Shown here piece after piece: positions 3,367 to 61,990 of a stretch of DNA of 64,000 nucleotides. Every line of letters begins with the position of its first letter. The stretch's first letter is position 1. The notes under the pieces are model-generated. The model did no database searches, was not told the origin of the DNA, and worked only from the letters and a program-made list of their open reading frames with translations. The stretch is from Trichosphaerium sp. ATCC 40318. Taxonomy: Eukaryota > Protista > Tubulinea. The stretch lies in contig JALMLS010000194.1 in the NCBI GenBank assembly GCA_038496445.1, positions 1 through 64,000 of the forward strand, read 5' to 3'. Position numbers and translations under genes: made by a program.

Positions 3367-5408
3367 TTAAAGAGTGTTGTTGTTCTTTGCTTTGATGATT
3401 TTAATACGTTCCCTCAAGCTGAATCCAAGATCTATCAGCACATCTTTATCAATTTCATCAATTGTTGCGCCTGCATCGTTCATCAATGATCCAAGTTCTT
3501 GAGCTCTTTGATTTGCGATACCCAACTTCATCAATATTGACTTCCAATCAGTTTCAACATTTAGAACTGATTGATTCTCATGTGGTACACCGAAATGTGA
3601 CTAAAAAATCGCCATTAATAACAACTGTGTTACAACAAGAAGAAAGAAGCAAAGTCGTGGAAGTGTACCTTGTTCTTTATGTCAACAGAAACATTTGGTT
3701 TATTGAGCCATGATTGTCGACTTAGGTTGTCAGATGAAGCGGAGCTGCTTCTAAAATCGTCACCAGGTGCTGGACTCTGATAAGACGATTTCTTTGGTGA
3801 TGAAGAGTTGTTGGCTATGTCATGCTGTGGCATACTATTTTCCTCTAATTCATAATACTAGGAACCAATTAGTTGTAACATTCATCTCACATGTGCGGTA
3901 TTTTATAAAGCAAATGGTACCTCATTGTTGGCTTCAACAGATACATTTGGTTTATTGCTCCAGGATTGTTGATTTAACACTTGGTTGTTTGATAATGTTT
4001 CATCAACTATCAGACTATACTTGCGTTGGTTGCACTCCTACAAATGTCAGTAAGTTGTTCACCTTATAGTGAGACGTACAGAGTTATTTTGTTGCTGTAT
4101 GTTCAAGCCTTCAAGTGCATCTTGAATCATGTCAAGGTGTTCAGTAGTATCTCCAAATTTGGTGTAGTCATGACTGGGATCAATCACAGCTTTTGACAAG
4201 TACTTATCTTTTCGGTCTTCTTTTAACTCTGCATTCATTGCTTTCACAGCATCATCGTTTTTATCTTTTATTGTTACTTTATTGGCTGGTTTAAAGTGCT
4301 TGTAGATTGTCAGACAGAAAGAAAGACAAATAAGATTTCAAAGTACCTTTTCATAATTGGTGAATGTTAACTTTTGTGGTGTTGATTGACCAAAATCATT
4401 ATTTCCACCTGTGACCAACTGAAAGTCATGAGATATTGCCAAGTAATGACGTCGTTTATTGGCAAACTCAAGATATTTTCCAGGTAATTTTAATGGTTTG
4501 TTTGATGAGAACGAATCAATCCATTTTCCATAACCCCAACCAAACAAACAACCTTCATCATCAATCGCAAATGATGACCAGTAACCAGCATGTACAGATT
4601 TGATGTTATTGAGTCCTTTGATGATACCCTGGCCATAATCGTAATCATCAATACCCAACCCAAGACACCCTTTGAAGTTGTGTCCAAAAGAAAATACTTG
4701 TCCTGACTTGAGGAGAACAAGTACATACGCAGTACCAATGGCAATATCAGTGGCATCATCAATACTTGGAACACGTGAAATTGTCTTTGGATTCAAGAAT
4801 AATGATTTATCTATCGCTTCATGGTCTCTTTGAAACATATCTTTTCCCCAAAGAAAGACATGACCTGTTGATGTCATTGCTCCACTTACAAACACATTAG
4901 TTTGAATTTTTTGAACATTTTGAAGATTTGGAATAACCGCTGGTGATGAAACTTTCAACTTGTTGAATGAATGACCCAATCCTTGATATTCGTTGTCTCC
5001 CCAAGAGTAGACATGACCTGATTTTGATAATGCCATACTCGCACGATAGGCAGAGACTTTCGTGATATTGTTGAGATTTGGAACACGTGTTGGTGACGAA
5101 ACAGGTGACGCAAAGTCACCCAGACCCAATGACCCATATGAATTACAGCCCCATGCATACACAATACCGTTTGAATCAACTGCAAGGCTATGAAACCGTC
5201 CAGCAGCAATACAGACGATATTTATGAGTGATTTTATTGGTCTTGCGATAGAACTCTTTTTTTCGTCTGTGTTACCCAATTGGCGGTAATTGTTTCGTCC
5301 CCACGTGTAAACAAAGCCATCGTCTGCGATTACCATTGAATGTTCGTAACCAGTGGCCAAACGATTAACATATTGTAAATTAACCGACGAAGATTGTGGC
5401 TCTGCCAT
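3367..5408 (-). CDS. RCC1-repeat propeller + linker + SAM-like domain protein, copy A
   Basis: ATG 5408 (MAEPQSS). RCC1 repeats (GxxHS..., WGxNxxGxLG). Donor AAG|GTACTT. Last exon DWKSILMKLGIANQRAQELGSLMND...VLIDLGFSLRERIKIIKAK; TAA at 3367. Has extra linker exons around 3670-4030. Confidence 0.85.
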
Positions 5409-5611
5409 TAAAGGTGCGTAATGTTCAAATTGATATAAAATTTTGATAGCCAAATCTCAACTGTAACAATACGCAAATTGACTGCCGTAGTTAGCGGTTC
5501 TCCCATAACTCACGTAAAATCGTAATATTGAAGTTTAGACTACGTGTAGCAAAACGGTTTGCCAACTGGTGTTTTGCTTGACAAATCCAGCATCAAAATA
5601 TTCGCTTGTTT

Positions 5612-10725: not shown

Positions 10726-12492
10726 TTATAGCATTTTGTTTTCCTTTGCTTTTATGACTTTGATACGCTCAATCACATTGAATCCAAGCTCTTCTAACAC
10801 TTCAGGAATGATTTCACTTTTCTTGATGGCTGCTTTGTTCATCAACGATCCAAGTTCTTGTGCTCTTTTACTCGAAATACCCAACCTCAACAATGTTGAT
10901 TTCCAATCATATTTGGGAGTAGCGACTGATTGATTCTCCTGAGGTGGACAGAACTCCGACTAAATGAACAAAATTAAATGTGAAGAAAATAAAATTAAAA
11001 CGAGACACCTTTGTGTTAGCGACTGAAACATGAGGCTTGTCATTCCATGATTGTTCAGATAAAAGTGACGTGTTGTAGTTTGATGAAACAGGGCGAACAT
11101 TTGAGGTGTCTTCATCAAGTGACAAGCTATGATTGTCAACCTAAAATACCATGTGAGATATGTATCGCTTATTTTCTGATACTTACATTGTTGATGTATT
11201 CATCTCGATTTTGGTGTATTTTAAAGGCTTCAAGGGCATCTTGAATGATATTAAGGTGATCAGGAGCATCTCCAAACTTGGTGTAATCACGATTGGGATC
11301 AACCACAGTTTTTGACAAGTACTTATCTTTTCTGTCTTCTTTTAACTCTGCATTCATTGCTTTCACAGCATCATTGTTTTTATCTTTTGCGATTACTTTA
11401 TTGGCTGGTTTAAAGTGCTTGTAGATTGTCAGACAAAAAGAAAGACAAATAAGATTTCAAAGTACCTTTTCATAATTGGTGAATGTTAACTTTTGTCGTG
11501 TTGATTCACCATAATTATTATATCCACCTGTGACCAACTGAAGGTCATGAGATATTGCCAAGTAATGAAATCGTTTATTGGCAAAATTTTAATGGTTTGT
11601 TTGATGAGAACGAATCAATCCATTCCCCTTCACCCCAACCAAACAAACAACCTTCATCATCAATGACAAATGATGTCCAGTAACCAGCATGTACAGATTT
11701 GATGTTATTGAGTCCTTTGATGATACCCTGGCCATACTCGTCATCAATACCCAACCCAAGACGCCCATTGTAGTTGTGTCCAAAAGAAAATACTTGTCCT
11801 GACTTGAGGAGAACAAGTACATGACTAAAACCAATGGCAATATCAGTGGCATCATCAATACTTGGAACACGTGAAATTGTCTTTGGATTCAAGAATAATG
11901 ATTTATCTATCGCTTCATGATCTGTTGTTCCCCAAAGAAATACATGACCTGTTGATGTCATTGCTCCACTTACACACGTGTTAGTTTGAATTTTTTGAAC
12001 ATTTTGAAGATTTGGAATAACCGCTGGTGATGAAACTTTTGAATTGTCGAATGAATGACCCAATCCTTGATCTCTGTTGTTTCCCCAAGAGTAGACATGA
12101 CCTGATTTTGATAATGCCATACTCACATGATAGGCAGAGACGTTCGTGATATTGTTGAGATTTGGAACACGTGTTGGTGACGAAACACGTGACGCAAAGT
12201 GACCCAGACCCAATTCACCTCGGTTATTACAGCCCCATGCATACACAATACCGTTTGAATCAACTGCAAGGCTATGTTCGTATCCAACAGCAATACAGAC
12301 GATATTTATGAGTGATTTTATTGGTCTTGCGATAGAATTCGTATTTTCGTCTGTATTACCCAATTGACGGTAATAGTTTTGTCCCCATGTGTAAACAAAG
12401 CCATCGTCTGCGATTACCATTGAATGTTCACTACCAGTGGCCAAACGGTTAACATATTGTAAATTAACCGACGAAGTTTGAGGTTCTGCCAT
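10726..12492 (-). pseudogene. RCC1-linker-SAM copy B, frameshifted by a 20-bp deletion in the last RCC1 repeat
   Basis: Same exon set as copy D, but CTCAAGATATTTTCCAGGTA (+ strand) is missing at ~11585, giving a premature stop (..PLKFCQ*). Downstream exons and SAM exon remain intact. Confidence 0.8.
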
Positions 12493-14088: not shown

Positions 14089-15073
14089 TTACAATTGTTT
14101 GTCTTGGTACTCAATAAAGTCAAGACGCTCAAGTACAGTTAATCCAAGTCTTTTCATAACCTTTCCTGTGACATCGTTCAAGTCAACGCACATACGATTC
14201 AGTTTGGATCCAAATTTTTGTGCTCTTGATTTGTCAAACCCTGCTGATATCAAAGTACTCACCCACTCAATTTTTTCACTTGATTGTACGGTTCTTTCAG
14301 ACGGTTTCGGCTTCTAACAGAAGTGAGTATAATCAATAAAAAACGGTAGCTTGTACATTCACTTTAGCAACATCTGAATGAGTTGTAACAAATGGTGTAC
14401 TAGATAAGTTGATGGTATTCTAAAAACCAGTTAATTAATACAAAATAAACATTTTTTATATTGATGTACCTTGTTGTCAATTACGGAAATATTTGGTTTA
14501 TTTATCCATGAATTTTGAGGCATTGCTGCTCTTGGATCATTTTGTATGTTGTCAGAACGAGTATCATCATTTGGTTGGTCATACTTCTTTATCACTATTA
14601 GCTACACTATTTGATTAGAACATACCTTATTGTAGTCTTTATGGCTTTGACTTATGTTGAGGAAGTTGTTGTCTTTATTTTGGTGTATTTTAAAGGCTTC
14701 AAGGGCATCTTGAATGATATCAAGGTGATCAGGAGCATCTCCAAACTTGGTGTAATCACGATTGGGATCAACCACAGCTTTTGACAAGTACTTATCTTTT
14801 CGGTCTTCTTTTACCTCTGCATTTATTGCTTTCACAGCATCATCGTTTTTATCTTTTGCGATTACTTTATTGGCTGGTTTAAAGTGCTTGTAGATTGTGA
14901 GACAAAAAGAAAGACAAATAAGATTTCAAAGTACCTTTTCATAATTGGTGAATGTTAACTTTTGTCGTGTTGATTGACCATAATTGTTATTTCCACCTGT
15001 GACCAACTGAAAGTCATGAGATATTGCCAAGTAATGATATGCTTTATTGGCAAACTCAAGATATTTTCCAGGT
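14089..15073 (-). pseudogene. RCC1-linker-SAM copy C, 5'-truncated (only the last ~140 bp of the RCC1 exon remain), class II SAM
   Basis: Homology to the other copies stops abruptly at 15073 (..TTTTCCAGGT|CAGG). Exon 2 KEDRKDKYLSKAVVDPNRDYTKFGD is present. Last exon EWVSTLISAGFDKSRAQKFGSKLNRMCVDLNDVTGKVMKRLGLTVLERLDFIEYQDKQL*. Confidence 0.8.
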
Positions 15074-18485: not shown

Positions 18486-20585
18486 ATGACTACTGAACAG
18501 CTGCCTAAAGAGATTTTATCATCTATTCTTTCCGAATTGCCGCTTTGCGAGTTGAATAGAGTGTCGTTGGTTTGTAAGTACGTGATTTTGGTTTAATTAG
18601 ATAAATAACGGTATACAGACGCTGGTCAGACACGTTTAGTAATGAACGGCTTTGGAGGACCCAATTTCGTTCTAGGTGGATGCCACAAAGCGAAGATGTT
18701 CCAAAATCGCATAGACTAGCGTCTAAAACATGGAAAGAGGTAATACATGGCAAAAACAAGCGTTAAAACTCACAATATTACAAGACGTACATTAAACACC
18801 ATATAACGAGTACATGGGATTATATTGATACACGTATAAAGCTTGACGAAGTGCGTTTGGGCAAAATAATGAAATGACACACTTGGCGTTAACGTATATT
18901 TTTTTGAAGGTATGGAACGTTAGTTGGAGTCCAAACGGAGAATATCTTTGTGCTTCAGGCAAGTCTACAAATACCTGCTTTTTTTTTTTTAAAACCTTCT
19001 TCAACAATGACACGTACAGTGGTCGTTCCATAGGACCATGGATGATCTCCTCCAGCGACCACTATGTTGTCATGTTTGTTGAGGTTTTATTTCTTGAAAG
19101 GTACAAGACGTGTTAATTAGTGTTACAGGCGCACATGGTATAAGCTTGTTTAAACTAGAAAATGATGAACTAGTATCTTGGCTTGACCTGGTAGATGGTA
19201 GAAGTGCTGTATCTTCACATAAATGGTCTGAATGTAGTAATTACCTTGTCTATGCTATGAAAGTACGTCAAGCACATTTTTTTTTTGTCACGTGATTTAA
19301 TTTAACCAAACTACAGGACAATGAAGTATGTACTATTTGGTACATGAAAGAGGAAAAGTATGTTGGAACGTTTGATGCGTCACCTTTTGATATAATGCCG
19401 CAGTTTGTGACAATAGAAGATAGGCTCTATTTGCTTACAAGTAAGATTTTCTTGGTACCTTTTTTTTTTTTTTTTTTTTCTTCTTTTTGTTATGTCTTTC
19501 TTTCTGCCTTTCTCTTTATGCTATCTATCTTGTTTTTTACTCATGTTGTTTCAAAGATTGTATTCATAGACGTCAAGTAGTTTTTTCAATATATACTATC
19601 TCTAATGGTAACTTGTTACCTTACAAGGTGGATGACTTTGGGATGACAATTCATAAGATGATACCACAAAAGTATGTATCTGAAATATGGTATTATACAA
19701 TATCAGGTCTGATGGTAACCAATGATCAGAAATATCTTGGCACGTGACAGAATATAAGTCTTTCACGTTTTTTTCGTTTTATTCACAAAAATATCACGTG
19801 ACTTCAAGTTTTTTTGTACTAATTTGGTGGTGACGTTTAGTCGCTTCTTGTTTTGATGAGATAGGTGGTTCAGATTATAAGATAAGCATAGTTGTCTATG
19901 AAATAAGCATGCTCTTCTCAGAAGAAACGAATGTGCTTAATTTTGATAATGCTTATTTACATGTACACGCGCCAGGAGATATTGTTGGATTAGTATGTTC
20001 ACCTGATTCGAAATCTGTGCTAGTAACGTATGTCTGTACAACACTTTTTGCTGTATTTTTTTTTCTCCAATTTTGAAGCTCTTTCGTTCAATTTCTTTGT
20101 TTCTTTTGTCCTTATTTGTCAATTTAACCTCTTATTCAGTTTACGTGCTATTACTGAAGAAGGCAAACTTCTTGAGGATTTACATATAGTAGAAATGTCG
20201 TTAGAGGATGGATCAATGACGACTATTGTTAATACAAAATGTCTTCATGGTGGAGGAGCTGATGTGTTTTTCATTTTTCCTTCATACTCCAATGACGGTA
20301 ATTATATTCTATGTGGTGATAATCATGGGAAAGTGGGTATTTTCACTAGAGGTGGAATAAAGCTGGCTATAATGGAACACAGTAAGTAACAAAAAATGTT
20401 GTGTGGCTTGTTTTTTTTGTTTTCTAATTTTTTTCTTACAAGAAATGAAAAAGCTTGTAAACCAAATATCTTGGCACCCGATAAAAGAAATGTTTGCAAC
20501 TGGATGTGATGATTATACTGTAAAATTATGGAAACCAAAAGCATCCATCGCTCCTCAAAAAGTGCAAGAAACGGAAGAAAACTAA
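18486..20585 (+). CDS. F-box / WD40-repeat protein, multi-exon
   Basis: N-terminal F-box MTTEQLPKEILSSILSELPLCELNRVSLV...RRW....LWR; WD repeats VWNVSWSPNGEYLCAS, YSNDGNYILCG, VNQISWHPIKEMFATGCDDYTVKLW. Confidence 0.8.
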
Positions 20586-20958: not shown

Positions 20959-22706
20959 TTATAGCATTTTGTTTTCCTTTGCTTTTATGACTTTGATACG
21001 CTCAATCACATTGAATCCAAGCTCTTCTAACACTTCAGGAATGATTTCTCTTTTCTTGATGGCTGCTTTGTTCATCAACGATCCAAGTTCTTGTGCTCTT
21101 TTACTTGAAATACCCAACCTCAACAATGTTGATTTCCAATCATATTTGGGAGTAGCGATTGATTGATTATCTTGAGGTGGACAGAACTCCGACTAAACGA
21201 ACAAAATTAAATGTGAAGAAAATAAAATTAAAACAAGACACCTTTGTGTGAGCGACTGAAACATGAGGCTTGTCATTCCATGATTGTTCAGATAAAAGTG
21301 ATGTGTCTACATCAAGTGGCAAGCGAGGATTGTTAACCTAAAATACCATGTGAGATACGTATTGCTTATTTTCTGATACTTACATTGTTGATGTATTCAT
21401 CTCGATTTTGGTGTATTTTAAAGGCTTCAAGGGCATCTTGAATGATATCAAGGTGATCAGGATCATCTCCAAACTTGGTGTAATCACGATTGGGATCAAC
21501 CACAGCTTTTGACAAGTACTTATCTTTTCTGTCTTCTTTTAACTCTGCATTCATTGCTTTCACAGCATCATCGTTTTTATCTTTTGCGATTACTTTATTG
21601 GCTGGTTTAAAGTGCTTGTAGATTGTGAGACAAAAAGAAAGACAAATAAGATTTCAAAGTACCTTTTCATAATTGGTGAATGTTAACTTTTGTGGTGTTG
21701 ATTCACCACAATGATCTCCACCTGTGACCAACTGAAAGTCATGAGATATTGCCAAGGAATGACATCGTTTATTGGCAAACTCAAGATATTTTCCAGGTAA
21801 TTTTAATGGTTTGTTTGATGAGAACGAATCAATCCATTTTCCTTCACCCCAACCAAACAAACAACCTTCATCATCAATCGCAAATGATGTATACACACCA
21901 GCATGTACAGATTTGATGTTATTGAGTCCTTTGATGATACCCTGGCCATAATCGTCATCAATACCCAACCCAAGACGCCCATCCTCGTTGTATCCAAAAG
22001 AAAATACTTGTCCTGACTTGAGGAGAACAAGTACATGACTAAAACCAATGGCAATATCAGTGGCATCATCAATACTTGGAACACGTGAAATTGTCTTTGG
22101 ATTCAAGAATAACGATTTATCTCTTGCTTCATCTCTTGTTTTTCCCCAAAGAAAGACATGACCTGTTGATGTCATTGCTCCACTTACATAACAATTAGTT
22201 TGAATTTTTTGAACATTTTGAAGATTTGAAATAACCGCTGGTGATGAAACTTTCGAATTGTCGAATGAATGACCCAATCCTTGATTTATGTTGTCTCCCC
22301 AAGAGTACACATGACCTGATTTTGATAATGCCATACTCACATAAAAGGCAGAGACTTTCGTGATATTGTTGAGATTTGGAACACGTGTTGGTGACGAAAC
22401 AGGTGACGCAAAGTCACCCAGACCCAATGCGCCACCTGAATTATATCCCCATGCATACACAATACCGTTTGAATCAACTGCAAGGCTATGTTCGCATCCA
22501 GCAGCAATACAGACGATATTTATGACTGATTTTATTGGTCTTGCGATAGAACTCGAGAATTCGTCTGTGTTACCCAATTGGCGCTCACTGTTTTGTCCCC
22601 ACGTGTAAACAAAGCCATCGTCTGCGATTACCATTGAATGTTCGCCACCAGTGGCCAAACGGTTAACATATTGTAAATTAACCGACGAAGATTGTGGCTC
22701 TGCCAT
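20959..22706 (-). CDS. RCC1-linker-SAM copy D (intact)
   Basis: ORF 21654-22706 is the RCC1 exon, followed by three spliced exons. SAM-like DWKSTLLRLGISSKRAQELGSLMNKAAIKKREIIPEVLEELGFNVIERIKVIKAK. Confidence 0.88.
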
Positions 22707-30821: not shown

Positions 30822-31106
30822 GAAGCGCACAAGAAGCGTAGCATGTAAACTTAGATACTGTTAAAAAAAAATTATTAAATAAAAACAACTTGTATCCAAA
30901 GAGCCATTAAATACCACTATCACCAAAATACCAGCTGTAGAGGTATTTGCATACCAAGATCCATATACAAGCAAAAAGAGCATTGGTAAAAAAATGTTTC
31001 ATGTGCGGTTAACTAGTAAAAAAAGACGTCCGAGATTTGCCTACCAAAATGAAATTAGGTGGCTATTTTTCAACGCCAACAATTATTACGACCATATCAC
31101 GCGTTT

Positions 31107-32894
31107 ATGGCAGAGCCGCAATCTTCGTTGGTTAATTTACAATATGTTAACCGTTTGGCCACTGGTGAACACCATTCAATGGTAATCGCAGACGATGGCT
31201 TTGTTTACACGTGGGGACAAAACGATCACCGTCAATTGGGTAATACAGACGAATTAACGAGTTATATCGCAAGACCAATAAAATCAGTCATAAATATCGT
31301 CTGTATTGCTGCTGGATACTTTCATAGCCTTGCAGTTGATTCAAACGGTATTGTGTATGCATGGGGCCGTAATTCAAACGGGTCATTGGGTCTGGGTGAC
31401 TTTGCGTCACCTGTTTCGTCACCAACACGTGTTCCAAATCTCAACAATATCACGAAAGTCTCTGCCTTTTATGTGAGTATGGCATTATCAAAATCAGGTC
31501 ATGTGTACTCTTGGGGAGACAACATAAATCAAGGATTGGGTCATTCATTCGACAATTCGAAAGTTTCATCACCAGCGGTTATTTCAAATCTTCAAAATGT
31601 TCAAAAAATTCAAACTAATTGTTATGTAAGTGGAGCAATGACATCAACAGGTCATGTCTTTCTTTGGGGAACAACAAAACATGAAGCGGTAGATAAACCA
31701 TTATTCTTGAATCCAAAGACAATTTCACGTGTTCCAAGTATTGATGATGCCACTGATATTGCCATTGGTTTTAGTCATGTACTTGTTCTCCTCAAGTCAG
31801 GACAAGTATTTTCTTTTGGACACAGCTTGCATGGGTGTCTTGGGTTGGGTATTGATGACGAGTATGACCAGGGTATCATCAAAGGACTCAATAACATCAA
31901 ATCTGTACATGCTGGTTTGCATACATCATTTGCGATTGATGATGAAGGTTGTTTGTTTGGTTGGGGTTTTGGGAAATGGATTGATTCGTTCTCATCAAAC
32001 AAACCATTAAAATTACCTGGAAAATATCTTGAGTTTGCCAATAAACAATGGCATTACTTGGCAATATCTCATGACTTTCAGTTGGTCACAGGTGGAGATA
32101 ATTATTGTGGTGAATCAACACGACAAAAGTTAACATTCAACAATCACCAAAAGGTACTTTGTAATCTCATTCATCTTGCTGTCTATTTGACAAGTCATTA
32201 GCAAACAAACAAAGATACAATCGACACTCAGCAATTGGATGAACAGCCAATCAACAATTCATCAATCAAAGTACATCCATCTGAAGAGATGTTCATATCA
32301 AAAAAGGGTATTCGAGATGTACCTCAGAAATTTGGACAAACAGAACAAGATCTTCAGATTCTCGAAAATGCTCGTAATCTCATTCAATCCAAACAACAAC
32401 AAGTCGCCGATATCAAAGTACGTATACAAACACCAAACTATTTTACATATTTGTCTTATTGTAACACTTTTCAGGATGACTCTATTGATGATTTGTCCAA
32501 ATACAATCCACCCACCAATAAATCTAATCAACGACCACCTATAATCGATGTTGATGATCTTGTATCAAGACAATCATGGGTTCAAGATAAGTTTGAAACG
32601 ATCAACCTCAGCAACGTACAACCAATAATTTTATTTCCTCATTTTTTACTAAATTGGTTTTTTTTGTAGCCTTCAATCGGAGTACCATCTGAATCTTTGA
32701 CAAATAACCAATCTTCATGGGTTTCAAAATTAGTGGTGGCAGGGTTTAGCGAAACAAGATCACAAGAGTTTGGATTATTGTTGGATCGAATGTGCGTTGA
32801 ATTGAAAGATATGACAGGTGAGCTTATGAAAGAGATTGGGTTCACACCATCAGAACGTTTCAAGTTTATCAAATATCAAGACAGCCACATGTAA
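31107..32894 (+). CDS. RCC1-linker-SAM copy E (intact; divergent linker, class II SAM)
   Basis: RCC1 exon ending NNHQK|GT. Divergent exon 2 (FISKKGIRDVPQKFGQTEQDLQILENA). Last exon SWVSKLVVAGFSETRSQEFGLLLDRMCVELKDMTGELMKEIGFTPSERFKFIKYQDSHM*. Confidence 0.85.
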
Positions 32895-36739: not shown

Positions 36740-38518
36740 ATGGCAGAGCCACAATCTTCGTCGGTTAATTTACAATATGTTAACCGTTTGGCCACTGGTG
36801 ATGAACATTCAATGGTAATTGCAGACGATGGCTTTGTTTACACGTGGGGACGAAACTATGAGCGCCAATTGGGTAATACAGACGAAAATGAGAGTTATAT
36901 CGCAAGACCAATAAAATCACTCATAAATATCGTCTGTATTGCTGCTGGATACTTTCATAGCCTTGCAGTTGATTCAAACGGTATTGTGTATGCATGGGGT
37001 TATAATTTAAATGGTGAATTGGGTCTGGGTGACTTTGCGTCACCTGTTTCGTCACCAACACGTGTTCCAAATCTCAACAATATCACGAAAGTCTCTGCCT
37101 ATGAAGTGAGTATGGCGTTATCAAAATCAGGTCATGTCTACTCTTGGGGATACAACAGATATCAAGGATTGGGTCATTCATTCGACAATTTGAAAGTTTC
37201 ATCACCAGCGGTTATTCCAAATCTTCAAAATGTTCAAAAAATTCAAACTAATCGGTTTGTAAGTGGAGCAATGACATCAACAGGTCATGTCTTTCTTTGG
37301 GGAACAACAAATAATAAAGCAAGAGATGAAGCAAGAGATAAATCATTATTCTTGAATCCAAAGACAATTTCACGTGTTCCAAGTATTGATGATGCCACTG
37401 ATATTGCCATTGGTTCTCGTCATGTACTTGTTCTCCTCAAGTCAGGACAAGTATTTTCTTTTGGACGCAACTACAATGGGTGTCTTGGGTTGGGTATTGA
37501 TGACAAGTATGGCCAGGGTATCATCAAAGGACTCAATAACATCAAATCTGTACATGCTGGTGTGCGGACATCATTTGCGATTGATGATGAAGGTTGTTTG
37601 TTTGGTTGGGGTAAAGGGAAATGGATTGATTCGTTCAGATCAAACAAACCATTAAAATTACCTGGAAAATATCTTGAGTTTGCCAATAAACGATGGCATT
37701 ACTTGGCAATATCTCATGACTTTAAGTTGGTCACAGGTGGAAATAATCATTATGGTAAATCAACACCACAAAAGTTGACATTCAACAATCACCAAAAGGT
37801 ACTTTGTAATCTCATTCATCTTTCTGTCTATTTGACAAGTCATTAGCAAACAAACAAAGATACTTGCAAATCCGAAGACAATGACATGAAAGAAGACAGA
37901 AAAGACAAGTACTTGTCAAAAGCTGTGGTTGATCCCAATCGTGACTACACCAAGTTTGGAGATGCTCCTGAACATCTTGATATCATTCAAGATGCCTTTG
38001 AAGCCTTTAAAATACTAAATCAAGAAAAAGATGTATTGTTTGTATTACAAAAATAGCTTTTAACACTAACGAACCTGGTAGACTGACAAAGTGTTTACTC
38101 CGTCACCTGATGAATCCAATCTCCAACCTCCAAATGACACGAATGAAATACCGCCACTAAATTCATGGATTGATAAGCCTCAAGTTTCTGTTGTTAACAC
38201 CAACAAGAAGGTAACCATCTTTGTTTTGCGTTCAGAAACAGAAAAATAACATAATTATTTTAGTCGCAATTCAGTCCACCACATGAGACTCAATCAATTG
38301 ATACTGTTGTTCAACCGACACAACCACAGATCGTTAATTGGAAGTTATTGCTTGCGAGGTTGGGCATCAAAAGCGAGAGAGCACAAGAACTTGGATTGTT
38401 GATGAACGAATTACGTATTAAACCTGACGACATTAACCAAGATGTACTGATTGAAATTGGATTCAGTTTGATGGAACGTATCAAAATCACCAAAGCGAAG
38501 CTTAACAACGTCATTTGA
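36740..38518 (+). CDS. RCC1-linker-SAM copy F (intact)
   Basis: RCC1 exon ending NNHQK|GT; an in-frame upstream ATG exists at 36692. Exon 2 QTNKDTCKSEDNDMKEDRKDK... SAM-like NWKLLLARLGIKSERAQELGLLMNELRIKPDDINQDVLIEIGFSLMERIKITKAK. Confidence 0.88.
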
Positions 38519-43591: not shown

Positions 43592-45376
43592 TCAAATGAT
43601 GTTGTTAAGCTTTGCTTTGGTGATTTTGATACGTTCCATCAAACTGAATCCAAGTTCAATCAGTACATCTTGGCTAATGTCGTCAGGTTTAATACGTAAT
43701 TCGTTCATCAACAATCCAAGTTCTTGTGCTCTCTCGCTTTTGATACCCAACCTCACAAGCGATAACTTCCAATTAATGATCTGTGGTTGTGTCGGTTGAA
43801 CAACAGTATCAATTGATTGAGTCTCATGTGGTGGACTGAATTGCGACTAAAATAATTATGTTATTTTTCTGTTTCTGAACGCAAAACAAAGATGGTTACC
43901 TTCTTGTTGGTGTTAACAACAGAAACTTGAGGCTTATCAATCCATGAATTTAGTGGCGGTATTTCATTCGTGTCATTTGGAGGTTGGAGATTGGATTCAT
44001 CAGGTGACGGAGTAAACACTTTGTCAGTCTACCAGGTTCGTTAGTGTTAAAAGCTATTTTTGTAATACAAACAATACATCTTTTTCTTGATTTAGTATTT
44101 TAAAGGCTTCAAAGGCATCTTGAATGATATCAAGATGTTCAGGGGCATCTCCAAACTTGGTGTAGTCGCGATTGGGATCAACCACGGCTTTTGACAAGTA
44201 CTTATCTTTTCTGTCTTCTTTTAACTCTGCATTCATTGCTTTCATGTCATTGTCTTTGGCTTTGCAAGTATCTTTGTTTGTTTGCTAATGACTTGTCAAA
44301 TAGACAGAAAGATGAATGAGATTACAAAGTACCTTTTGGTGATTGTTGAATGTTAACTTTTGTCGTGTTGATTCACCAAAATGATTATTTCCACCTGTGA
44401 CCAACTGAAAGTCATGAGATATTGCCAAGTAATGATTTAATTTATTGGCAAACTCAAGATATTTTCCAGGTAATTTTAATGGTTTGTTTGATGAGAACGA
44501 ATCAATCCATTTCCCTTCACCCCAACCAAACAAACAACCTTCATCATCAATCGCAAATGATGTACATATACCAGCATGTACAGATTTGATGTTATTGAGT
44601 CCTTTGATGATACCCTGGCCATACTTGTCATCAATACCCAACCCAAGACGCCCATCCTCGTTGTGTCCAAAAGAAAATACTTGTCCTGACTTGAGGAGAA
44701 CAAGTACATGCTCATAACCAGTGGCAATATCAGTGGCATCATCAATACTTGGAACACGTGAAATTGTCTTTGGATTCAAGAATAATGATTTATCTCTTGC
44801 TTCATCTTTTGTTGTTCCCCAAAGAAAGACATGACCTGTTGACGTCATTGCTCCACTTACAAACAAATTAGTTTGAATTTTTTGAACATTTTGAAGATTT
44901 GGAATAACCGTTGGTGATGAAACTTTCCAATTGTCGAATGAATGACCCAATCCTTGATATATGTTGTTTCCCCAAGAGTAGACATGACCTGATTTTGATA
45001 ACGCCATACTCACATGAAAGGCAGAGACTTTCGTGATATTGTTGAGATTTGGAACACGTGTTGGTGACGAAACAGGTGACACAAAGTCACCCAGACCCAA
45101 TGCGCCATATGAATTACAGCCCCATGCATACACAATACCGTTTGAATCAACTGCAAGGCTATGTTCGTATCCAGCAGCAATACAGACGATATTTACGAGT
45201 GATTTTATTGGTCTTGCGATATAACTCTCATTTTCGTCTGTATTACCCAATTGGCGATAGTTTTGTCCCCACGTGTAAACAAAGCCATCGTCTGCGATTA
45301 CCATTGAATGGTATCCACCAGAGGCTAAACGGTTAACATATTGTAATTTAACCGACAAAGATTGTGGTTCTGCCAT
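43592..45376 (-). CDS. RCC1-linker-SAM copy G (intact)
   Basis: ORF 44285-45376 is the RCC1 exon. 3' exons and introns are nearly identical to copy F, in inverted orientation; TGA at 43592. Confidence 0.88.
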
Positions 45377-49836: not shown

Positions 49837-52800
49837 TTAGAAATTCTCCTTGTGGTAGACAAATTTGGTACCGTTCCTCGTGTACTTTATAGCAGCCTCA
49901 TTAAGCTTCTTAGAGAAAATAGGAGGTCCACAAAAGAACACTCCTATTTTTTCGCCCTTGTATCGCTGCTCCTGTTGCTGGAATATCTGCGGTATCTTAG
50001 GCCTGTGGTAGTTTGTACGGGCTTCAAGACTAAACAAAAAAAGAAAACGTCAGAAGAGAGATATTTGGGTTTAAACGTTTAAAAAATGGAAACGTTTTTT
50101 GGAAAGTCTCAGACATAAATGTGTGAACTAAACAATCTTTTTATTGCTACGGCAAGAAATTTACGTTCAAGTAACATGAATAAAATAGTTTGATAAAAAC
50201 ACGTAGATGCGTAGACGCGTAAAAAGTAAGAAAATAAACAAAACTACAAAAAAAAAATTTTAAATGCTTACCCAGTTACTTGATCAGGGGCATCATCACC
50301 AGCGATCATAACAGCCTTTATTTGATCAGGAGAGAGCGCAGAAGTTAAATAGATATTAATCTCGAGGAAATCACTGCTTGACTTAGATTCTAGATCTATA
50401 ATAGATAGGGTAAACATAAGCGATGTTTGGACCGATTGTTGTGAATTAGAAATAAAAGCCAAAATAATTCAATCTTTAATAAAAAAAGTTGTAGACGCAA
50501 GTTTACGCAAAACAACGCTTATTTGAGAGCATTACGTGTGCGTAGAGGTTTGTTTTTTATTTGTTAGAAAAAGGGTATTGTTGGCACTGTGTAACGGCAT
50601 AAATGACGCTAGATCACCATGACAATAATAGAGATTTTGAATTGGGTATAAGCCATACGATAATAAAACAAAAAAATCCAATTAACGAAAGGGTTTACGC
50701 GTAAACATATTTTTTGCCCAACTTTGAGAAAAGGGAAAAAAAAAACTGCGTTTAGGAAAAAAGTCTGACAACTCAATTGATTATAAAAACTGACGCTATG
50801 GCGCGTAGAGAAGACAGTCTAGATTTTTTTCCAAATGGCGTTATACAGTAAAATCTTTTTTGTAGACTAGAATAGAATTAACACACGTACCGGATAGTAG
50901 ATCAATGAACCATTCGAAGGCATGACGATCTCTGTTGGACCAATAAAAGTGCACTTTGTTAAGGTTTGTTAGATTTCCTTCGTCTATTTGGTAACGGATG
51001 TCCTTTAGGATGGATGCCATTGGCGTAACACCGATACCAGCTGAGAAGAGCATCAAATTCTTAAATTTGTAGAACTCCTCTGAAGCAGCTCCATAAGGCC
51101 CATCAACGAGCAGGATAGGCTTTCCGTTTGGTGCAGTCAACATGTTTTCCTGTATAACACCAATTTCTTTTTCTGGGTTGAGAAGCTGGTAGAGTTCTCC
51201 TGTCCAATCACCAACAATCTAAATTACATTAAATCAGCAAATTTTTTTATAACCTAGCAACAGCACCAACTCAAACAGTGTGCTTAACGCCTTTCACTTT
51301 AAGCCAGAAATGCACGTAAATAAAAAATACAACTACACGTACTCGAATATGAACTGATAAGAAATCTTCGTCAGGACTACTACTGATAGTAAAAGGATGC
51401 CACTCGTAGTCAGCAATATATGGACATTGCAAAAAGATGTATTGACCTGGCTGGTAGTTGAAGGTAGCTTTCTTCATACGAATCTCCAATACGCGTGAAG
51501 GGTGTTGTATTGCCTTTAAAATAATAGTCTTTTGAGAACCACGGATGAGTCTGATAAGACGTTCAAGAGCATAGAACGAAAATGGTCCAAGAACCCAAAT
51601 CCAAAAGTTTGCACGCTCAAGTAGCTCCAATTGACCTTTTTCGTAAAGTGTAAGTGAAAGAAATACAAAAAGGGTTTTTCGAGTTATGAATCTACACGCG
51701 TAGCACGCGTAGTTCAAATTTACAATTACTAAATACTATTTTGTAGACTTGTTTAATATGCATAAAAACGTACCATGTGCGGCTATGAGACCATAGAAAA
51801 CAATAAAGAGATGGTGAGTGTACCAAAAGGCCTCAAACATATTGCTCCTCACGTATTGCACAGCAGACGTGTACATTAGAACCATCACAATACTAGTGAG
51901 TACCCCAGTGATACCAGGAAGGCGAGCAAACACCTACAATAAAAAAATTAAATAAATAAATCTCTTTATACCAACCAACGCAACATAGTATTTAATGACG
52001 CAATGGTACAACAAAAAAGAACGATTTGGGAAATGAAAAAAACAAAAAAAACAAAAAACAAAAATGAGCGAAAATGTCGTCCTTCGTTGTGCTTTATAGA
52101 AGTACGTACAACAACCCAATAAGATACAGGATCAGGTGAGAGGTTCAATGCAACCAATTCATCAGATGTAGCACGGTTACTTGTGACATTCCAGAAATTA
52201 ATAAAATGAGCTCCAGAATGGAATGTAACCAAAACCATTACCCACCAAGCTACGAACTTGTGGAATACTATATTCTTATCTATAGGTAGATACGTGCCAA
52301 CGAATGAGCCGCGAAGACTAAAAATCATCAGCGAAATTTTTTTTTGTTTTTTTCAAATAAGTCTTATTTAGCTTCGTTTTCTTTGCAGTATTCGAGTTGT
52401 CAGCTTGTTTTGTTTGCTCCAAAATTACGTACAAAGATAAAAAGTTTCTCAGTACGCAAACAAGAAGAAACGCCGCGTTAAACTTAATAGCAGCTGCTGT
52501 ACCGCGAGCAATACATAAACCGTGACCAAGGACCTAAAAAAGGTATTTAGCGGCTAATTTAGTTTACTTATTCTTTCTTTAAAAACAACCCATTTACTGT
52601 ATTGAGCGCGTATGTTTATAGCAAAAGAGTATTTTTGCGTACTTGAAAAGGAGTAATCTGAATACCTGGTGTAAGGTCGCTTTGGTCTTGTCTTACCATG
52701 TAATCTTTGCAATGGCGTTAGCTAATTGGAATTTCGTAATAACCGTACAGTGGTACCGTTCTCCGATTAACACAATGTTAATTATAACGTAAACTATTAT

Positions 52801-53145
52801 GAATATCAGTTTGACGCCATCATTTACCCAGTAATCGTGTATTCGTTCGCGTATTGTCTTTTTGAGTTTAGAAGCTGTTGAAGGAGTACCAACGGGATCT
52901 ATTGAGCCTTGTGGGGCTGTACTTATTCCAGCCAAAGGCTCTTTGTTGCTCTTTGCCTTTTTGCCAGGTTTTGCAGCTTTAGGTTTATCAAAACTATCGT
53001 CGTCCTGTGGCGGTAGCGCTGGCGGTGCGTTAGTGTATTGCTCAGCCGATTCATCGTCGTCCATTGGAGGCAATGGCGGAAGCCCGCGAGGATTGTTCTC
53101 TTCGGGCTCAGGAGGAAGTGGTGGTGGTGCTCGATTAGATGCCAT
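49837..53145 (-). CDS. nox: NADPH oxidase (gp91phox/Nox family) with a Pro/acidic N-terminal extension, multi-exon
   Basis: Heme His motifs FHKFVAW...HSGAH and FWYTHHLF...AAHG; FAD motif EWHPFTISS; NADPH motifs VDGPYG, GIGVTP, GVFFCGP; terminal HKENF*. Confidence 0.95.
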
Positions 53146-55437: not shown

Positions 55438-55774
55438 AAAAAGGGTGTAAGGAATCCATATCTCTTTTTCCTCTGGCTGGACTTGTTGTCACAAAGTCTG
55501 CCTCACTTGTATATCGAAGTAGTGTACACAAAAAAAGCAATAAACCCATACACTTGTATCATACATACTTTTTCTTTTTACCTTGCTTGGTCATCAACCA
55601 AGTTTTTTTTTATAGCTTACCATTCTTTTTCTTACTGATTAAGTATTAAAACAAGAGCTCTGGCGTGTTCTACTACAAGAGTATTAGCCTACAAAAAAAA
55701 AAAGAAAAACCGTCGCACGCTTTGAATCGGGTTTTGAAAAAGTCAAATGATCGAGTATTCATACCGCCTCAGTA

Positions 55775-57533
55775 ATGGCAGAGCCGCAATCTTCGTCAGG
55801 TAATTTACAATATGTTAACCGTTTGGCCACTGGTTTAGGCCATTCAATGGTAATCGCAGACGATGGCTTTGTTTACACGTGGGGACGAAACAATGAGCGC
55901 CAATTGGGTAATACAGACGAAAAAACGAGTTCTATCGCAAGACCAATAAAATCAGTCATAAATATCGTCTGTATTGCTGCTGGATGGAATCATAGCCTTG
56001 CAGTTGATTCAAACGGTATTGTGTATGCATGGGGCTGTAATTCATATGGCGCATTGCACTTTGCATCACCTGTTTCGTCACCAACACGTGTTCCAAATCT
56101 CAACAATATCACGAAAGTCTCTGCCTATTTTGTGAGTATGGCGTTATCAAAATCAGGTCATGTCTACTCTTGGGGAGACAACAGATTTCAAGGATTGGGT
56201 CATTCATTCGACAAGTTGAAAGTTTCATCACCAGCGGTTATTCCAAATCTTCAAAATGTTCAAAAAATTCAAACTAACTTGTTTGTAAGTGGAGCAATGA
56301 CGTCAACAGGTCATGTCTTTCTTTGGGGAACAACAGATCATTTGTTGCAAACAGACCATGAAGCGATAGATAAATCATTATTCTTGAATCCAAAGACAAT
56401 TTCACGTGTTCCAAGTATTGATGATGCCACTGATATTGCCATTGGCGAAGAGCATGTACTTGTTCTCCTCAAGTCAGGACAAGTATTTTCTTTTGGACAC
56501 AACTACTATGGGTGTCTTGGGTTGGGTATTGATGACAAGTATGGCCAGGGTATCATCAAAGGACTCAATAACATCAAATCTGTACATGCTGGTGGTTGGA
56601 CATCATTTGCGATTGATGATGAAGGTTGTTTGGTTGGTTGGGGTGAAGGGAAATGGATTGATTCGTTCTCATCAAACAAACCATTAAAATTACCTGGAAA
56701 ATATCTTGAGTTTGCCAATAAAGAACAACATTACTTGGCAATATCTCATGACTTTCAGTTGGTCACAGGTGGAAATAATCATTATGGTCAATCAACACCA
56801 CAAAAGTTAACATTCACCAATTATGAAAAGGTACTTTGAAATCTTATTTGTTTTTCTTTTGTCTGACAATCTACAAGCACTTTAAACCAGCCAATAAAGT
56901 AATCACAAAAGATAAAAACGATGACGCTGTGAAAGCAATGAATGCAGAGTTAAAAGAAGACAGAAAAGATAAGTACTTGTCAAAAGCTGTGGTTGAGCCC
57001 AATCGTGATTACACCAAGTTTGGAGATGCTCCTGATCACCTTGATATCATTCAAGATGCCCTTGAAGCCTTTAAAATACACCAAAATCGAGATGAATACA
57101 TCAACAATGTAAGTATCAGAAAATAAGCGATACCTATCTCACATGGTATTTTAGGTTAACAATCCTCGCTTGCCACTTGATATAGACACCTCAATTGTAT
57201 CTGAACAATCATGGAATGACAAGCCTCATGTTTCAGTCGCTCACACAAAGGTGTCTTGTTTTAATTTAATTTTCTTCACATTTAATTTTGTTCGTTTAGT
57301 CGGAGTTCTGTCCACCTCAAGAGAATCAATCAATCGCTACTCCCAAATATGATTGGAAGTCAACATTGGCGAGGTTGGGTATTTCAAGTGCAAGAGCACA
57401 AGAACTTGGATCGTTGATGAATGAATCAGGTATCAAACCTGGAGACATCACCTCAGATGTATTAGAAGAGCTTGAATTCAATCCAATTGAACGTATCAAG
57501 GTCATCAAAGCAAAGCGCAAAAATGCTCTATAA
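55775..57533 (+). CDS. RCC1-linker-SAM copy H (intact; reference model, 538 aa)
   Basis: Exons 55775-56830, 56878-57108, 57155-57250 and 57300-57533, all introns phase 0. SAM-like DWKSTLARLGISSARAQELGSLMNESGIKPGDITSDVLEELEFNPIERIKVIKAK. Confidence 0.9.
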
Positions 57534-59072
57534 ATCGATGAAGCGCATATCTTAAGCCTCCTCAATGATGAATACACCAAAAACAATCGAATATTAACAA
57601 TTGGTTTTGTAATAGTTTAGATGTCTTACAATAAATACTAGCTTGTTTTGAATAGAACAATGACATTTTCTTAACACATTGAGGGTCACATAGAGAACTT
57701 TTTGCTGAGCAGATTGAAAACTAAAAAAAAAACGTAAGTGTGGTTCACAAATGTACGCTAGAAACTTCATATTACAGCTACAAGTAGACATAGTTATGTA
57801 AAACATACTACAAACATACTGGTAACCAAAAACTATCACATGGCTGTAAATTCGTAAAAAACTGAAAAACGAATGTGCTTGTTTTTGATAATTTTCATTC
57901 GAATGGTAAACAGTTTCTGAAAGCCAAAATCACTTTTCAATGGTGCCTTACTATACACACAGTATCTTGCATTATGTTACAAAGCTCCTGGGTTCAACTA
58001 CGGATTTCAACATAAAATATGGCAGAACGCGACCGCCTGTTTCTAAGGCAACGGAAATACATTTCCCTTTATCTAGAAAGGGTGGTACCAAAGTTTCAAA
58101 ACAGGGCTTGCTGGTCTACCTTATCTTTACACAAATACTCACCAAAGTATAGTACACGCGATTATACGCGTAGAAAAGAACAATAAGAAGAACTTTTCTT
58201 GTTTATTCCAGTCAGTCGTATCCACAGCGCTCAAATACGTTTATTAAATCCATTACAACCTATTTAGTACTGTAGTGACCTGCAAGAGTAAACAAGTGGT
58301 AGTGGTTCACGGAAAGTATGGTTTACAGTTTTTTCAAGGCAAAAAATGTGCCGAGAAAGTTCTCGGATCAGGTGCAATTATTGTACACTCTACGTTACCC
58401 AATGTGTTCTAAACGCATTATAAATGCAGGATATGCTTATCAACTACCTAGTAAAAAGCTCTACACTCAGTCAATTGACTTGTGATAAGAAATGTTAACT
58501 AGGGACAGTGACATTCACATTTACCTTTGAGAATATTGGGTAAAACACTAGGCTTTGGACTTATGTATCAAACACTAACAAAGTCAAAGCCATTGAGAGC
58601 ATATAAAACGTAAAAAAAGCATGTGGTGCCATGGTACAACATCAACAAAATCGCACATTTTTAAACGGTTTAGCTACAGATTTTGTTGCTGAGTTTCTTA
58701 GCCGTCAGTTAACCAGCTACAGATTTTTATAGCTGGCTTAGTTGGTACTGGACCACGACCAACTCTATTTGTAAACATTGCGCCATACAATATCACCAAT
58801 AAACAACTATTGCTATTGACTTCAATTTTTTTTCATTTTTTCATTTTTAGTAGTTTACAGTTTTCTCAACATCGTAGTGCTCCGTTAATTACGCTATTTC
58901 TCCAAAAACCCCAGCACTACAGTATCGCTTACACTTGATATCCCATACATACGTCACGTGATAGCAAGTGACTTATACTGATATTTTCATTTTCTACTAT
59001 CCAAAGTCATTTATTTGTACTTTATTTAGGATGCTTCATACTACCGCAGTAAAACGAGATACTTGTCACCTA

Positions 59073-59893
59073 TTACACCTCCCACCCAAGATTTAGCTCG
59101 ATATTATAGATTTGACGCATCAGTATCAGTGTACCTATGCTATCCACTGCTTCCAAAGCGTACTGCAATGAGCACAAGGTACAATAAAGAGTTGAAAAAG
59201 CATGGAAAATGGCTTCGACCCTAAAAAAGAAGTCAGTAACTGAGAAAAAAAAAACCACTACAACACACAAGAGCACGTACACAATCATAGACAACTTTGA
59301 GGAGGTTCTTCTCTGGGTCTACTTTTCATCTGCACCGCAAGGGTAGATTATTGGAGCACCCTTATCGTTACAGATAACCTTACGAATACCTGTGAAGCTG
59401 ATTTTTCCAGAATCTGTTTTTGGGCATTTCATGATGTTTCTCTCATCTCCATTGGCATAGTGAATGTAGCACAATTTTGTAGCGAATGGCATGGTATCAT
59501 GGTTAACCTTCATTAGGAGTCCACAACCCATACTGAAACTGACCTATCAACAAAAGATAAGATACAAAGAAACTTAAACTCCAAGCAACTTTGTAACATA
59601 CACATTGGACAGAGAAGGCCATCAGCAACAACAACCTTCAAGAGTTTTGTGACAATTGCATAGTTGATACCATCACCTTGAATTACGTTGTATCTACATA
59701 GTAAAACAAAATCGTCAGTAAAGATCAAAATGAGAAAAAAAAAAGATATGCTTACCCTTTTTACAACCTTGTTACCCCTTTGAGTTAGTTTCAAATCCGC
59801 CAGTCTTAGCACCTGCCTTCAAACCAGCAACAACACAGTCTTTTGGATCACTAGAATCTAGGCGAATAACCATGATTGAGTTACCACGCTCCT
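59073..59893 (-). pseudogene. Possible decayed multi-exon gene
   Basis: Exon-like blocks with GT/AG edges (ERGNSIMVIRLDSSDPKDCVVAGLK; YNVIQGDGINYAIV..CPMC) interrupted by in-frame stops. Confidence 0.25.
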
Positions 59894-60242
59894 AAAGGGC
59901 TGTGAGAAAAGAAAATACTCATCGAATAAAAAAAAAACAAAACAAAAAAAAACAGTTTCAATCTGGTGTGCAATCTAAAATTGCTCGTGTTTAGCTTTAC
60001 AATCTTCACGTGGGTAGGTTCATTTTGTTAGATGCAAAGCAGTTGAGTTTCGCGTTCTTTTTGTGGATGTAGCACTCAAAAGTACTTGGCACTTGCCAAG
60101 ACAAAGACAATCGTTTAAATAGGCGCAGGAACATGTAGTAACTCATCTGCGGCAGGTTTAAAACCTACCATAAGAAATGGCGTCAAGCTTAGTAGTTCAA
60201 AAGCCAACGAATATTGAGCACATCACGTAACCTAACGTTTTA

Positions 60243-61990
60243 ATGGCAGAGCCGCAATCTTCGTCGGGTAATTTACAATATGTTAACCGCTTGGCCTCTG
60301 GTTGGGCACATTCAATGGTAATCGCAGACGATGGCTTTGTTTACACGTGGGGACATAACAATGAGCGCCAATTGGGTAATACAGATGAAGAAAAGAGTTC
60401 TATCACAAGACCAATAAAATCACTCATAAATATCGTCTGTATTGCTGCTGGATGGAATCATAGCCTTGCAGTTGATTCAAACGGTATTGTGTATGCATGG
60501 GGCTGTAATTCAGATGGTAAATTGGGTCTGGGTCACTTTGCATCACCTGTTTCGTCACCAACACGTGTTCCAAATCTCAACAATATCACGAAAGTCTCTG
60601 CCTATGAAGTGAGTATGGCATTATCAAAATCAGGTCATGTCTACTCTTGGGGAGACAACTCATATCAAGGATTGGGTCATTCATTCGACAAGTTGAAAGT
60701 TTCATCACCAGCGGTTATTCCAAATCTTCAAAATGTTCAAAAAATTCAAACTAATTGTTGTGTAAGTGGAGCAATGACGTCAACAGGTCATGTCTTTCTT
60801 TGGGGAACAACAAATAATAAAGCAATAGATAAATCATTATTCTTGAATCCAAAGACAATTTCACGTGTTCCAAGTATTGATGATGCCACTGATATTGCCA
60901 TTGGTTTCGTCATGTACTTGTTCTCCTCAAGTCAGGACAAGTATTTTCTTTTGGACACAACGACAATGGGCGTCTTGGGTTGGGTATTGATGACGAGTAT
61001 GGCCAGGGTATCATCAAAGGACTCAATAACATCAAATCTGTACATGCTGGTGTGTTACATCATTTGCGATTGATGATGAAGGTTGTTTGTTTGGTTGGGG
61101 TAAAGGGAAATGGATTGATTCGTTCAAATCAAACAAACCATTAAAATTACCTGGAAAATATCTTGAGTTTGCCAATAAACGATTTCATTACTTGGCAATA
61201 TCTCATGACTTTCAGTTGGTCACAGGTGGAGATAATTATTTTGGTGAATCAACACCACAAAAGTTAACATTCACCAATTATGAAAAGGTACTTTGAAATC
61301 TTATTTGTCTTTCTTTTTGTCTCACAATCTACAAGCACTTTAAACCAGCCAATAAAGTAATCGCAAAAGATAAAAACAATGATGCTGTGAAAGCAATGAA
61401 TGCAGAGTTAAAAGAAGACAGAAAAGATAAGTACTTGTCAAAAGCTGTGGTTGAGCCCAATCGTGATTACACCAAGTTTGGAGATGATCCTGATCACCTT
61501 GATATCATTCAAGATGCCCTTGAAGCCTTTAAAATACACCAAAATCAAGATGAATACATCAACAATGTAAGTATCAGAAAATAAGCAATACGTATCTCAC
61601 ATGGTATTTTAGGTTAACAATCCTCGCTTGCCACTTGATGTAGACACATCACTTTTATCTGAACAATCGTGGAATGACAAGCCTCATGTTTCAGTCGCTC
61701 ACACAAAGGTGTCTTGTTTTAATTTTATTTCTTCACATTTAATTTTGTTCGTTTAGTCGGAGTTCTGTCCACCTCAAGAGAATCAATCAGTCGCTACTCC
61801 CAAATATGATTGGAAGTCAACATTGGCGAGGTTGGGTATTTCAAGTGCAAGAGCACAAGAACTTGGATCGTTGATGAACAAAGCAGCCATCAAGAAAAGT
61901 GAAATCATTCCTGAAGTGTTAGAAGAGCTTGGATTCAATGTGATTGAGCGTATCAAAGTCATAAAAGCAAAGGAAAACAAAATGCTATAA
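60243..61990 (+). pseudogene. RCC1-linker-SAM copy I with two -1 frameshifts (or consensus errors) at hypervariable slots
   Basis: 5 nt instead of 6 at 60906-60910 (GGT TTCGT CAT) and at 61052-61056 (GGT GTGTT ACA). The rest of the gene is intact to TAA 61990. Confidence 0.75.

Follow-up and report, generated by a model that had tools for sequence, protein, structure and literature searches.

The first 64,000 nucleotides (forward strand) of contig JALMLS010000194.1 of the tubulinean protist Trichosphaerium sp. ATCC 40318 (assembly GCA_038496445.1), hereafter the window, harbor a dispersed gene family which combines an RCC1-like propeller with a predicted SAM-like tail. In this eukaryotic DNA, with 33-40% G+C and zero N runs, we found eight full-length copies of a 1.0-kb propeller exon and nine of the tail exon. 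The propellers share a near-identical framework and differ at a limited set of codons, and there is good support for reading them as homogenised propellers that bear a diversified binding face and are followed by a SAM-like tail. The propeller open reading frames (ORFs), of 276-384 amino acids, start at positions 5408, 12492 and 22706 on the minus strand, 31107 and 36740 on the plus strand, 45376 on the minus strand, and 55775 and 60243 on the plus strand, where an earlier note on this DNA had placed eight RCC1 exons; in this order they are called A, B, D, E, F, G, H and I, with C denoting a truncated copy. All eight match the Pfam families RLD (PF25390) and RCC1 (PF00415) with E-values from 1e-57 to 1e-35, and their scores exceed the profile thresholds (193-200 bits against a cut-off of 150 for PF25390; 119-128 bits against 21.7 for PF00415).

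A tblastn search with the downstream peptides of gene D recovered nine tail exons, one for each of these copies and one for the truncated C. The nine genes counted in the earlier note are matched by nine tails, but only six genes (A, D, E, F, G and H) look intact: three of the nine copies are broken, with B and I being frameshifted and C lacking its 5' part. Gene D (20959..22706, minus strand) provides the gene model, with exon 1, encoding the propeller, at 21663-22706, exon 2 at 21384-21614, exon 3 at 21242-21337 and exon 4, which encodes the SAM-like tail and the stop codon, at 20959-21192. This model also fits gene H (55775..57533, plus strand; exons at 55775-56830, 56878-57108, 57155-57250 and 57300-57533) and, with variations, the remaining copies, so that the three exons per gene envisaged earlier are replaced by four, or five in A. 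Exon 1 of H has an in-frame 9-nt deletion near 56057, which removes three framework residues (GLG). Gene A (3367..5408, minus strand; exon 1 at 4347-5408, tail exon including the stop codon at 3367-3600) has an extra copy of exon 3, as the linker exon with the QSW..KP.VSV motif is present twice. Gene F (36740..38518, plus strand) has exon 1 at 36740-37798, linker exons from 37847 and the tail exon at 38264-38518, and gene G (43592..45376, minus strand) has exon 1 at 44333-45376 and the tail exon at 43592-43846. Gene E (31107..32894, plus strand; exon 1 at 31107-32153) stands out for its divergent tail exon (32670-32894) and for a longer linker exon, unrelated to those of the other copies, which starts at 32202 and whose end is not defined.

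Among the broken copies, gene B (10726..12492, minus strand; exon 1 at 11466-12492, tail exon at 10726-10959) has its frame shifted by a 20-nt deletion near 11585 in exon 1 and is probably a pseudogene. Copy C (14089..15073, minus strand) is truncated at the 5' end; at 14671-15073 it retains only the final ~135 nt of exon 1, followed by intron 1 and exon 2, and its divergent tail exon (14089-14313) agrees in type with that of E. Gene I (60243..61990, plus strand; exon 1 at 60243-61287, tail exon at 61757-61990) belongs to a duplicate of the D locus, ~1% diverged, of which it makes up the 3' part, and its frame is shifted by two 1-nt deletions, at ~60905-60910 and 61055/61056, both within the variable positions described below. 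The family is dispersed in both orientations among ordinary genes and, as these separate the copies, does not constitute a simple tandem array.

The predicted proteins are about 535 residues long with a hydrophilic N-terminus, and neither a signal peptide nor a membrane segment was seen in their sequences, consistent with the cytosolic location suggested in the earlier note. A QSW-x-(D/N)KP-x-VSV motif is kept in the linker exon preceding the tail in all copies (D exon 3 at 21242-21337, the matching exons of A (twice), B, F, G, H and I, and the end of the E linker), with the remaining linker diverging; it perhaps acts as a short linear motif or marks a processing site. In each copy, exon 1 contains a recurrent 93-residue ORF in an alternative reading frame (e.g. 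21803-22084, minus strand, in D), which is most simply seen as a by-product of the conserved framework sequence. The palindrome CACGTG also occurs three times in the propeller exon of all copies (alignment nucleotides ~101-106, 323-328 and 640-645). Genes E and F have ~230 nt of upstream sequence in common, including an in-frame 16-codon extension (31059-31106 and 36692-36739). A contig from one public sequencing run joins an E/F-type leader to the ATG, pointing to a defined 5' untranslated region for at least the E/F subtype; the true start is probably the conserved MAEPQ.

Contigs of four public runs, from four studies, were aligned to positions 55500-61499. The three H introns at 56831-56877, 57109-57154 and 57251-57299 (47, 46 and 49 nt; all GT..AG) are missing from these contigs, which shows that transcription and splicing of family members extend as far as the tail. 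The contigs yield no expression levels and, with paralogues this similar, do not distinguish which copies are expressed. At both 1-nt deletion sites of gene I every covering contig has one base more; these contigs probably derive from paralogues, and thus neither confirm nor correct the assembly there.

The most striking property of the family is the distribution of differences along exon 1. Before inspecting the variation, we took the RCC1 repeat consensus as the sole basis for choosing 42 slot positions, six for each of the seven blades: both x of GxxH and all four x of WGxNxxGxLG. Three or more residues occur at 33 of these 42 columns as against 9 of the 314 other exon-1 columns (Fisher p = 4e-30), and the mean pairwise residue identity is 25% at columns with at least three residues as opposed to 94% outside the motif-defined slots. 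Every slot residue listed in the earlier note was reproduced, and its portrayal of a framework conserved down to silent sites, with slots differing by whole codons, agrees with the DNA alignment: the differences are clumped as replacements of 2-6 neighboring codons in a framework that is near-identical, silent sites included. Framework codons are 97.3% identical in DNA compared to 59% for the hypervariable codons, which make up only ~12% of the exon and contain 96 varying nucleotide columns out of 126, against 74 of 942 elsewhere. By the Nei-Gojobori method, the nonsynonymous divergence (dN) is 0.51 in the slots versus 0.03 in the rest of exon 1, and the synonymous divergence (dS) 0.23 versus 0.05. 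The ratio of slot dN to framework dS is 10.2 (bootstrap 95% confidence interval (CI) 6.5-17), and dN/dS inside the slots is 2.3 (CI 1.5-3.6), i.e. above 1, as had been predicted. Relative to the framework, the hypervariable columns are enriched 4-7-fold in E, C, Y and R and ~2-fold in H; the earlier emphasis on Y, W, F, H, R, E and N therefore holds for E, Y, R and H and less so for F, W and N, which show a weaker enrichment, and it had passed over C.

Structure prediction places this variation in a definite context. The AlphaFold2 model of D exon 1 (copy D was used for both structure models; predicted local distance difference test (pLDDT) 87, predicted template modelling score (TM) 0.87) has ~27 strands arranged as a seven-bladed propeller, and its best Foldseek match is the photoreceptor UVR8 (TM 0.84, root-mean-square deviation (rmsd) 2.4 A over ~341 columns), followed by RPGR, HERC2 and RCC1. 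Up to strand 23 of the model, all hypervariable residues lie in or at the edge of odd-numbered loops and none in even-numbered ones; the last few fit the same rule once the DSSP-merged strand 294-312 is taken as a hairpin. As alternate loops of an up-and-down meander share a side, the variable residues would be expected on a single face of the propeller. This placement, already proposed in the earlier note, is independently backed by UVR8: in a phmmer alignment its G-W-R-H falls on the GxxH slots of blades 1-3, and its dimer interface is formed by Trp 233, 285 and 337 together with Arg 286 and 338 of the GWRH motifs (PMC4501546). The Trp triad of the UVR8 GWRHT motifs is not conserved in the family, the aligned positions being hypervariable slots (GE, CE and FY in copy D). 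With identities of 20-27%, the family is probably not orthologous to RCC1, UVR8 or HERC, and the variability of the face that UVR8 uses for interaction argues against a single fixed partner of the kind bound by the Ran exchange factor RCC1 (identity ~20-22%).

The divergence of exon 1 does not track the age of the genes as recorded by their tails. Between copies, dS of the tail exon ranges from 0.02 (D-I) and 0.04 (B-D, F-G) through 0.3-1.2 to over 2 or saturated for E; in each of the 28 pairs, exon-1 framework dS stays at 0.03-0.07 and dN at the hypervariable columns at 0.5-1.1, such that the slots are saturated even where the tails differ by 2-4%. In most pairs the DNA similarity between loci starts within 2-20 nt of the ATG, and in old pairs it ends near the exon-1 donor site. 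Most slot blocks are private to one copy, and those that are shared form a mosaic in conflict with any single tree: D equals E across blades 3-5 only; at the second slot H equals I, E equals F and B equals G; and at the next slot G equals H. The four-gamete test gives a minimum number of recombination events (Rm) of at least 29 over 1 kb, and of at least 9 from framework sites alone. The recent segmental duplicate formed by D and I is particularly telling: divergence amounts to 0.9% in its 3' flank, 1.7% in the remainder of the gene, 2.5% in the exon-1 framework and 36% in the hypervariable codons, the last being as high as in any random pair. The uniform framework dS despite disparate tail ages, the sharp boundaries, the mosaic blocks, Rm and the D/I pair together indicate that exon 1 is decoupled from the rest of the gene and acts like a cassette that ectopic conversion or crossover passes between loci. 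A self-blastn comparison of D exon 1 returned only chance matches of 10-31 nt, the blades of one gene being dissimilar in DNA. It is the exon as a whole that is homogenised, and not the repeat.

The tail is best read as a SAM-like fold. Its AlphaFold2 model, built with the nine-sequence alignment (pLDDT 84), shows four DSSP helices and a short turn, and Foldseek ranks the Sla1 SHD2 domain at the top (TM 0.82 on the target). With VIA-align, Sla1 SHD2 superposes at Z 9.5 (rmsd 1.6 A over 61 of 66 residues), followed by ~20 SAM domains at Z 5-7, including those of Tric1, SARM1, ASK3, ANKS3, BICC1, EphB2 and tankyrase, and an ESM Atlas feature search yielded weak SAM leads only (0.80-0.84). The claim that the last exon is a SAM domain thus finds a counterpart in the predicted fold, but not in Pfam. 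Tail dN/dS is 0.3-0.6 in all pairs with appreciable tail divergence, indicating that this module is under purifying selection.

The genes between the copies encode an NADPH oxidase, a family-C G-protein-coupled receptor, and CID, Fz-domain and F-box proteins, and the neighboring genes are broken up into short exons. The NADPH-oxidase-type gene, between G and H (50841-53145, minus strand), has multiple exons encoding FAD_binding_8 and NAD_binding_6 domains and a proline-rich N-terminal extension. An F-box gene (18486-20585, plus strand; Pfam F-box E-value 2e-8 on the first exon) lies tail-to-tail with gene D and, judging from its ORF translations, may also carry WD40 repeats; it has been duplicated along with the 3' part of D beside gene I (62560-64000, minus strand) in a 2-kb block that differs by 0.9%. 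At 59019-59892 contigs of three of the runs match at ~93-95%, with two segments of different letters, which suggests a further expressed gene with a close paralogue elsewhere.

Of the outcomes that the earlier note had named as refuting, none was observed. Taking these observations together, we consider it probable that this is a lineage-specific propeller family in which exon 1 is exchanged among loci and the loop codons of one face are kept diverse by selection, forming an inherited repertoire of binding proteins. Under this proposal, ectopic gene conversion and crossover would move the propeller exon between loci, keeping the framework near-identical and reshuffling blocks of loop codons among the copies. 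Conversion by itself would level the slots along with the framework, and drift cannot produce a tenfold excess; hence, something opposes homogenisation at these positions. The ~40 loop codons of the variable face most plausibly stay hyperdiverse as selection favors new and different binding specificities, acting on a common pool of slot alleles which conversion reshuffles, a scheme demonstrated for the het-d/het-e WD family of Podospora (PMC1805685); such selection is the likely cause of the slot diversity. The variable face would then contact ligands, and the SAM-like tail might couple binding to oligomerisation or to the recruitment of an adaptor. As regards function, a role in recognizing pathogens, prey or non-self, such as that of the cytosolic sensor with a SAM signaling tail pictured in the earlier note, is a hypothesis.

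Several points weigh against this proposal or caution against reading it too strictly. Silent changes are themselves raised in codons touching the slots (proportion of synonymous differences 0.136 versus 0.01-0.05), and both 1-nt deletions of gene I are placed inside slots, two features that would fit a local mutational process as well. The estimates come from only eight sequences, whose recombination precludes a tree-based site model; the Nei-Gojobori counts are rough at saturated codons; and the tenfold ratio of slot dN to framework dS is not a classical omega, because gene conversion lowers the framework dS. The assignment of the slots to one face derives from strand order and the UVR8 alignment rather than from coordinates, and the RNA evidence consists of assembled contigs, with the library type of the runs being no more than a guess. 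Finally, Pfam detected neither SAM nor any other domain in the tails (six of which were tested for SAM), exon 2 or the linker, even at E-values up to 10.

The silent excess and the deletions bring up the possibility that targeted mutagenesis, whether in the germline or while cells grow, rewrites the slot codons, which would then not be diversified mainly by selection on point mutations. Such mutagenesis would account for the predominance of slot blocks private to one copy, the concentration of silent differences in codons touching the slots, the restriction of the variation to so small a fraction of the exon, the saturation of slots even between copies with barely diverged tails, and the location of the 3-nt indels of D, G and A, like the two deletions of I, inside slots. 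A dedicated site-directed process of this type, be it codon-block hypermutation or micro-conversion, would turn the family into a true diversity-generating system. Yet a crossover where exon 1 ends on its 3' side explains the D/I pair equally well, the same local silent excess is expected from old slot alleles that are held by selection and have silent changes in tight linkage, some slot blocks are common to several copies as conversion would give, and the sample of frameshifting indels is two. The slot columns vary among all four bases, which departs from the adenine-specific pattern of retroelements and disfavors a diversity-generating retroelement target; no template-like extra exon-1 fragment was found in the window, whose ORFs were not all scanned for a reverse transcriptase. 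To our knowledge, no mechanism for targeted rewriting of such slots exists in eukaryotic protists. On balance, we regard both a predominantly mutational origin of the diversity and a dedicated system producing it as unlikely.

Selection maintaining diversity on the binding face also has to be set against the simpler idea that the loops are unconstrained and drifting, or the copies decaying pseudogenes, with the framework conserved for folding. That the variable positions are the 'x' of the RCC1 motif, variable across the superfamily, and that a third of the copies are broken would agree with such a view. However, neutral sites would have been homogenised too, contrary to a slot dN about ten times the framework dS and a slot dN/dS whose lower bound is 1.5; the residues at the slots are not random but biased to Y, E, R, C and H; the six intact copies retain full reading frames and splice sites; the tails have a low omega; and spliced transcripts exist. 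Neutral decay is thus highly improbable. Still less credible is that the copies are artefacts, in the form of collapsed or mis-joined repeats or uncorrected read errors. The two deletion sites of gene I, where no covering contig has the deletion, could indeed be assembly errors; but every copy has unique 5' and 3' flanks among different ordinary genes, contigs of the four independent studies match parts of the window at 99% or more, and the other copies are free of stray frameshifts. A different question is what the diversified surface recognizes. It could serve recognition within the species or of the organism's own targets, as in kin discrimination, mating or substrate adaptors, rather than the sensing of pathogens or prey. 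The closest analogue, the het-d/het-e WD family of Podospora, works in allorecognition (PMC1805685), RLDs are commonly protein-protein adaptors, and the neighbors in the window are ordinary genes with no link to defense. Conversely, many co-expressed paralogues are more in keeping with a repertoire than with one polymorphic recognition locus, and a cytosolic location argues against kin recognition at the cell surface; we therefore think self-directed recognition to be rather unlikely, if the foremost of the alternatives.

No close relative of the family turned up in the protein databases searched. A word-indexed search of 5.8 billion clusters with the propeller exon retrieved only RCC1 proteins at 21-36% identity (full-length matches at most 33%), and an exhaustive HMMER search of 1.84 billion representatives retrieved only distant multi-RLD proteins of 1,100-7,200 residues with at most 46% identity; word-indexed searches with the tail and with the first 140 residues gave zero matches. 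Likewise, literature searches yielded only papers on HERC5 and fungal NOD-like receptors (NLRs), and none describing an RCC1 family that is hypervariable or evolves in concert; as in the earlier note, no described family with this architecture was recognized.

Fixed scaffolds carrying hypervariable contacts are known from vertebrate antibodies, the variable lymphocyte receptors of lampreys, plant and fungal NLRs and few other systems. If our proposal is correct, a free-living amoeba-like protist has independently invented this principle with an RCC1-type propeller and a SAM-like tail, dispensing with a NOD module; a propeller of this type has not been reported before as the scaffold of such a heritable set of binding proteins. 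Framework and contact codons contrast with unusual sharpness. The family would offer a tractable system for asking how gene conversion and selection jointly build recognition diversity, and why single-celled predators need such diversity, be it against bacteria and giant viruses or towards prey or kin. It might also interest protein engineers, as ~40 change-tolerant positions have been marked by nature.

Among proteins of the same fold, the RLDs of UVR8, RCC1, HERC2 and RPGR have the seven blades (TM 0.78-0.84) and the repeat motifs in common with the family, but belong to single conserved genes with fixed surfaces, to which its identity is just 20-27%. The predicted tail, in turn, superposes on Sla1 SHD2 and on canonical SAM domains, such as those of tankyrase, SARM1, BICC1 and the Eph receptors, and differs from them in sequence, with identities of 8-27% and no Pfam SAM match. 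The antiviral RLD of HERC5 has been reported to be under positive selection (PMC4021598); this is a single gene with a HECT ligase fusion compared between species, and not a repertoire of concertedly evolving paralogues. The NLRs of zebrafish and the highly variable NLRs of plants are reported as large inherited receptor families in which gene conversion acts exon by exon and the ligand-binding domain varies (PMC4852459). They use leucine-rich repeat or B30.2 sensors with NACHT domains, without the codon-sharp contrast of framework and slots on a propeller. The nearest parallel is offered by the HNWD multigene family of Podospora anserina (het-d, het-e and het-r), which encodes NLRs with WD40 propellers. 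Concerted evolution keeps their repeats near-identical in DNA, diversifying selection acts in each repeat on a small number of surface residues of the interaction face, blocks are reshuffled between loci, and some members are pseudogenes (PMC1805685). The likeness to HET-E/D drawn in the earlier note thus extends to the mechanism and not to the architecture. In exon 1 the Pfam matches are confined to RCC1 families, and the linker and tail give none, which rules out an NLR of the HNWD type, there being no NACHT/NOD or effector domain; the want of DNA similarity between blades equally rules out internal repeat homogenisation of that type. What the two have in common is concerted evolution between loci together with diversified residues on a propeller surface; in the fungus, however, the fold is WD40 and the homogenised unit is the single WD repeat, exchanged inside genes as well as from gene to gene, with repeat number varying, whereas in the protist the fold is RCC1-like and the unit is the whole propeller exon.

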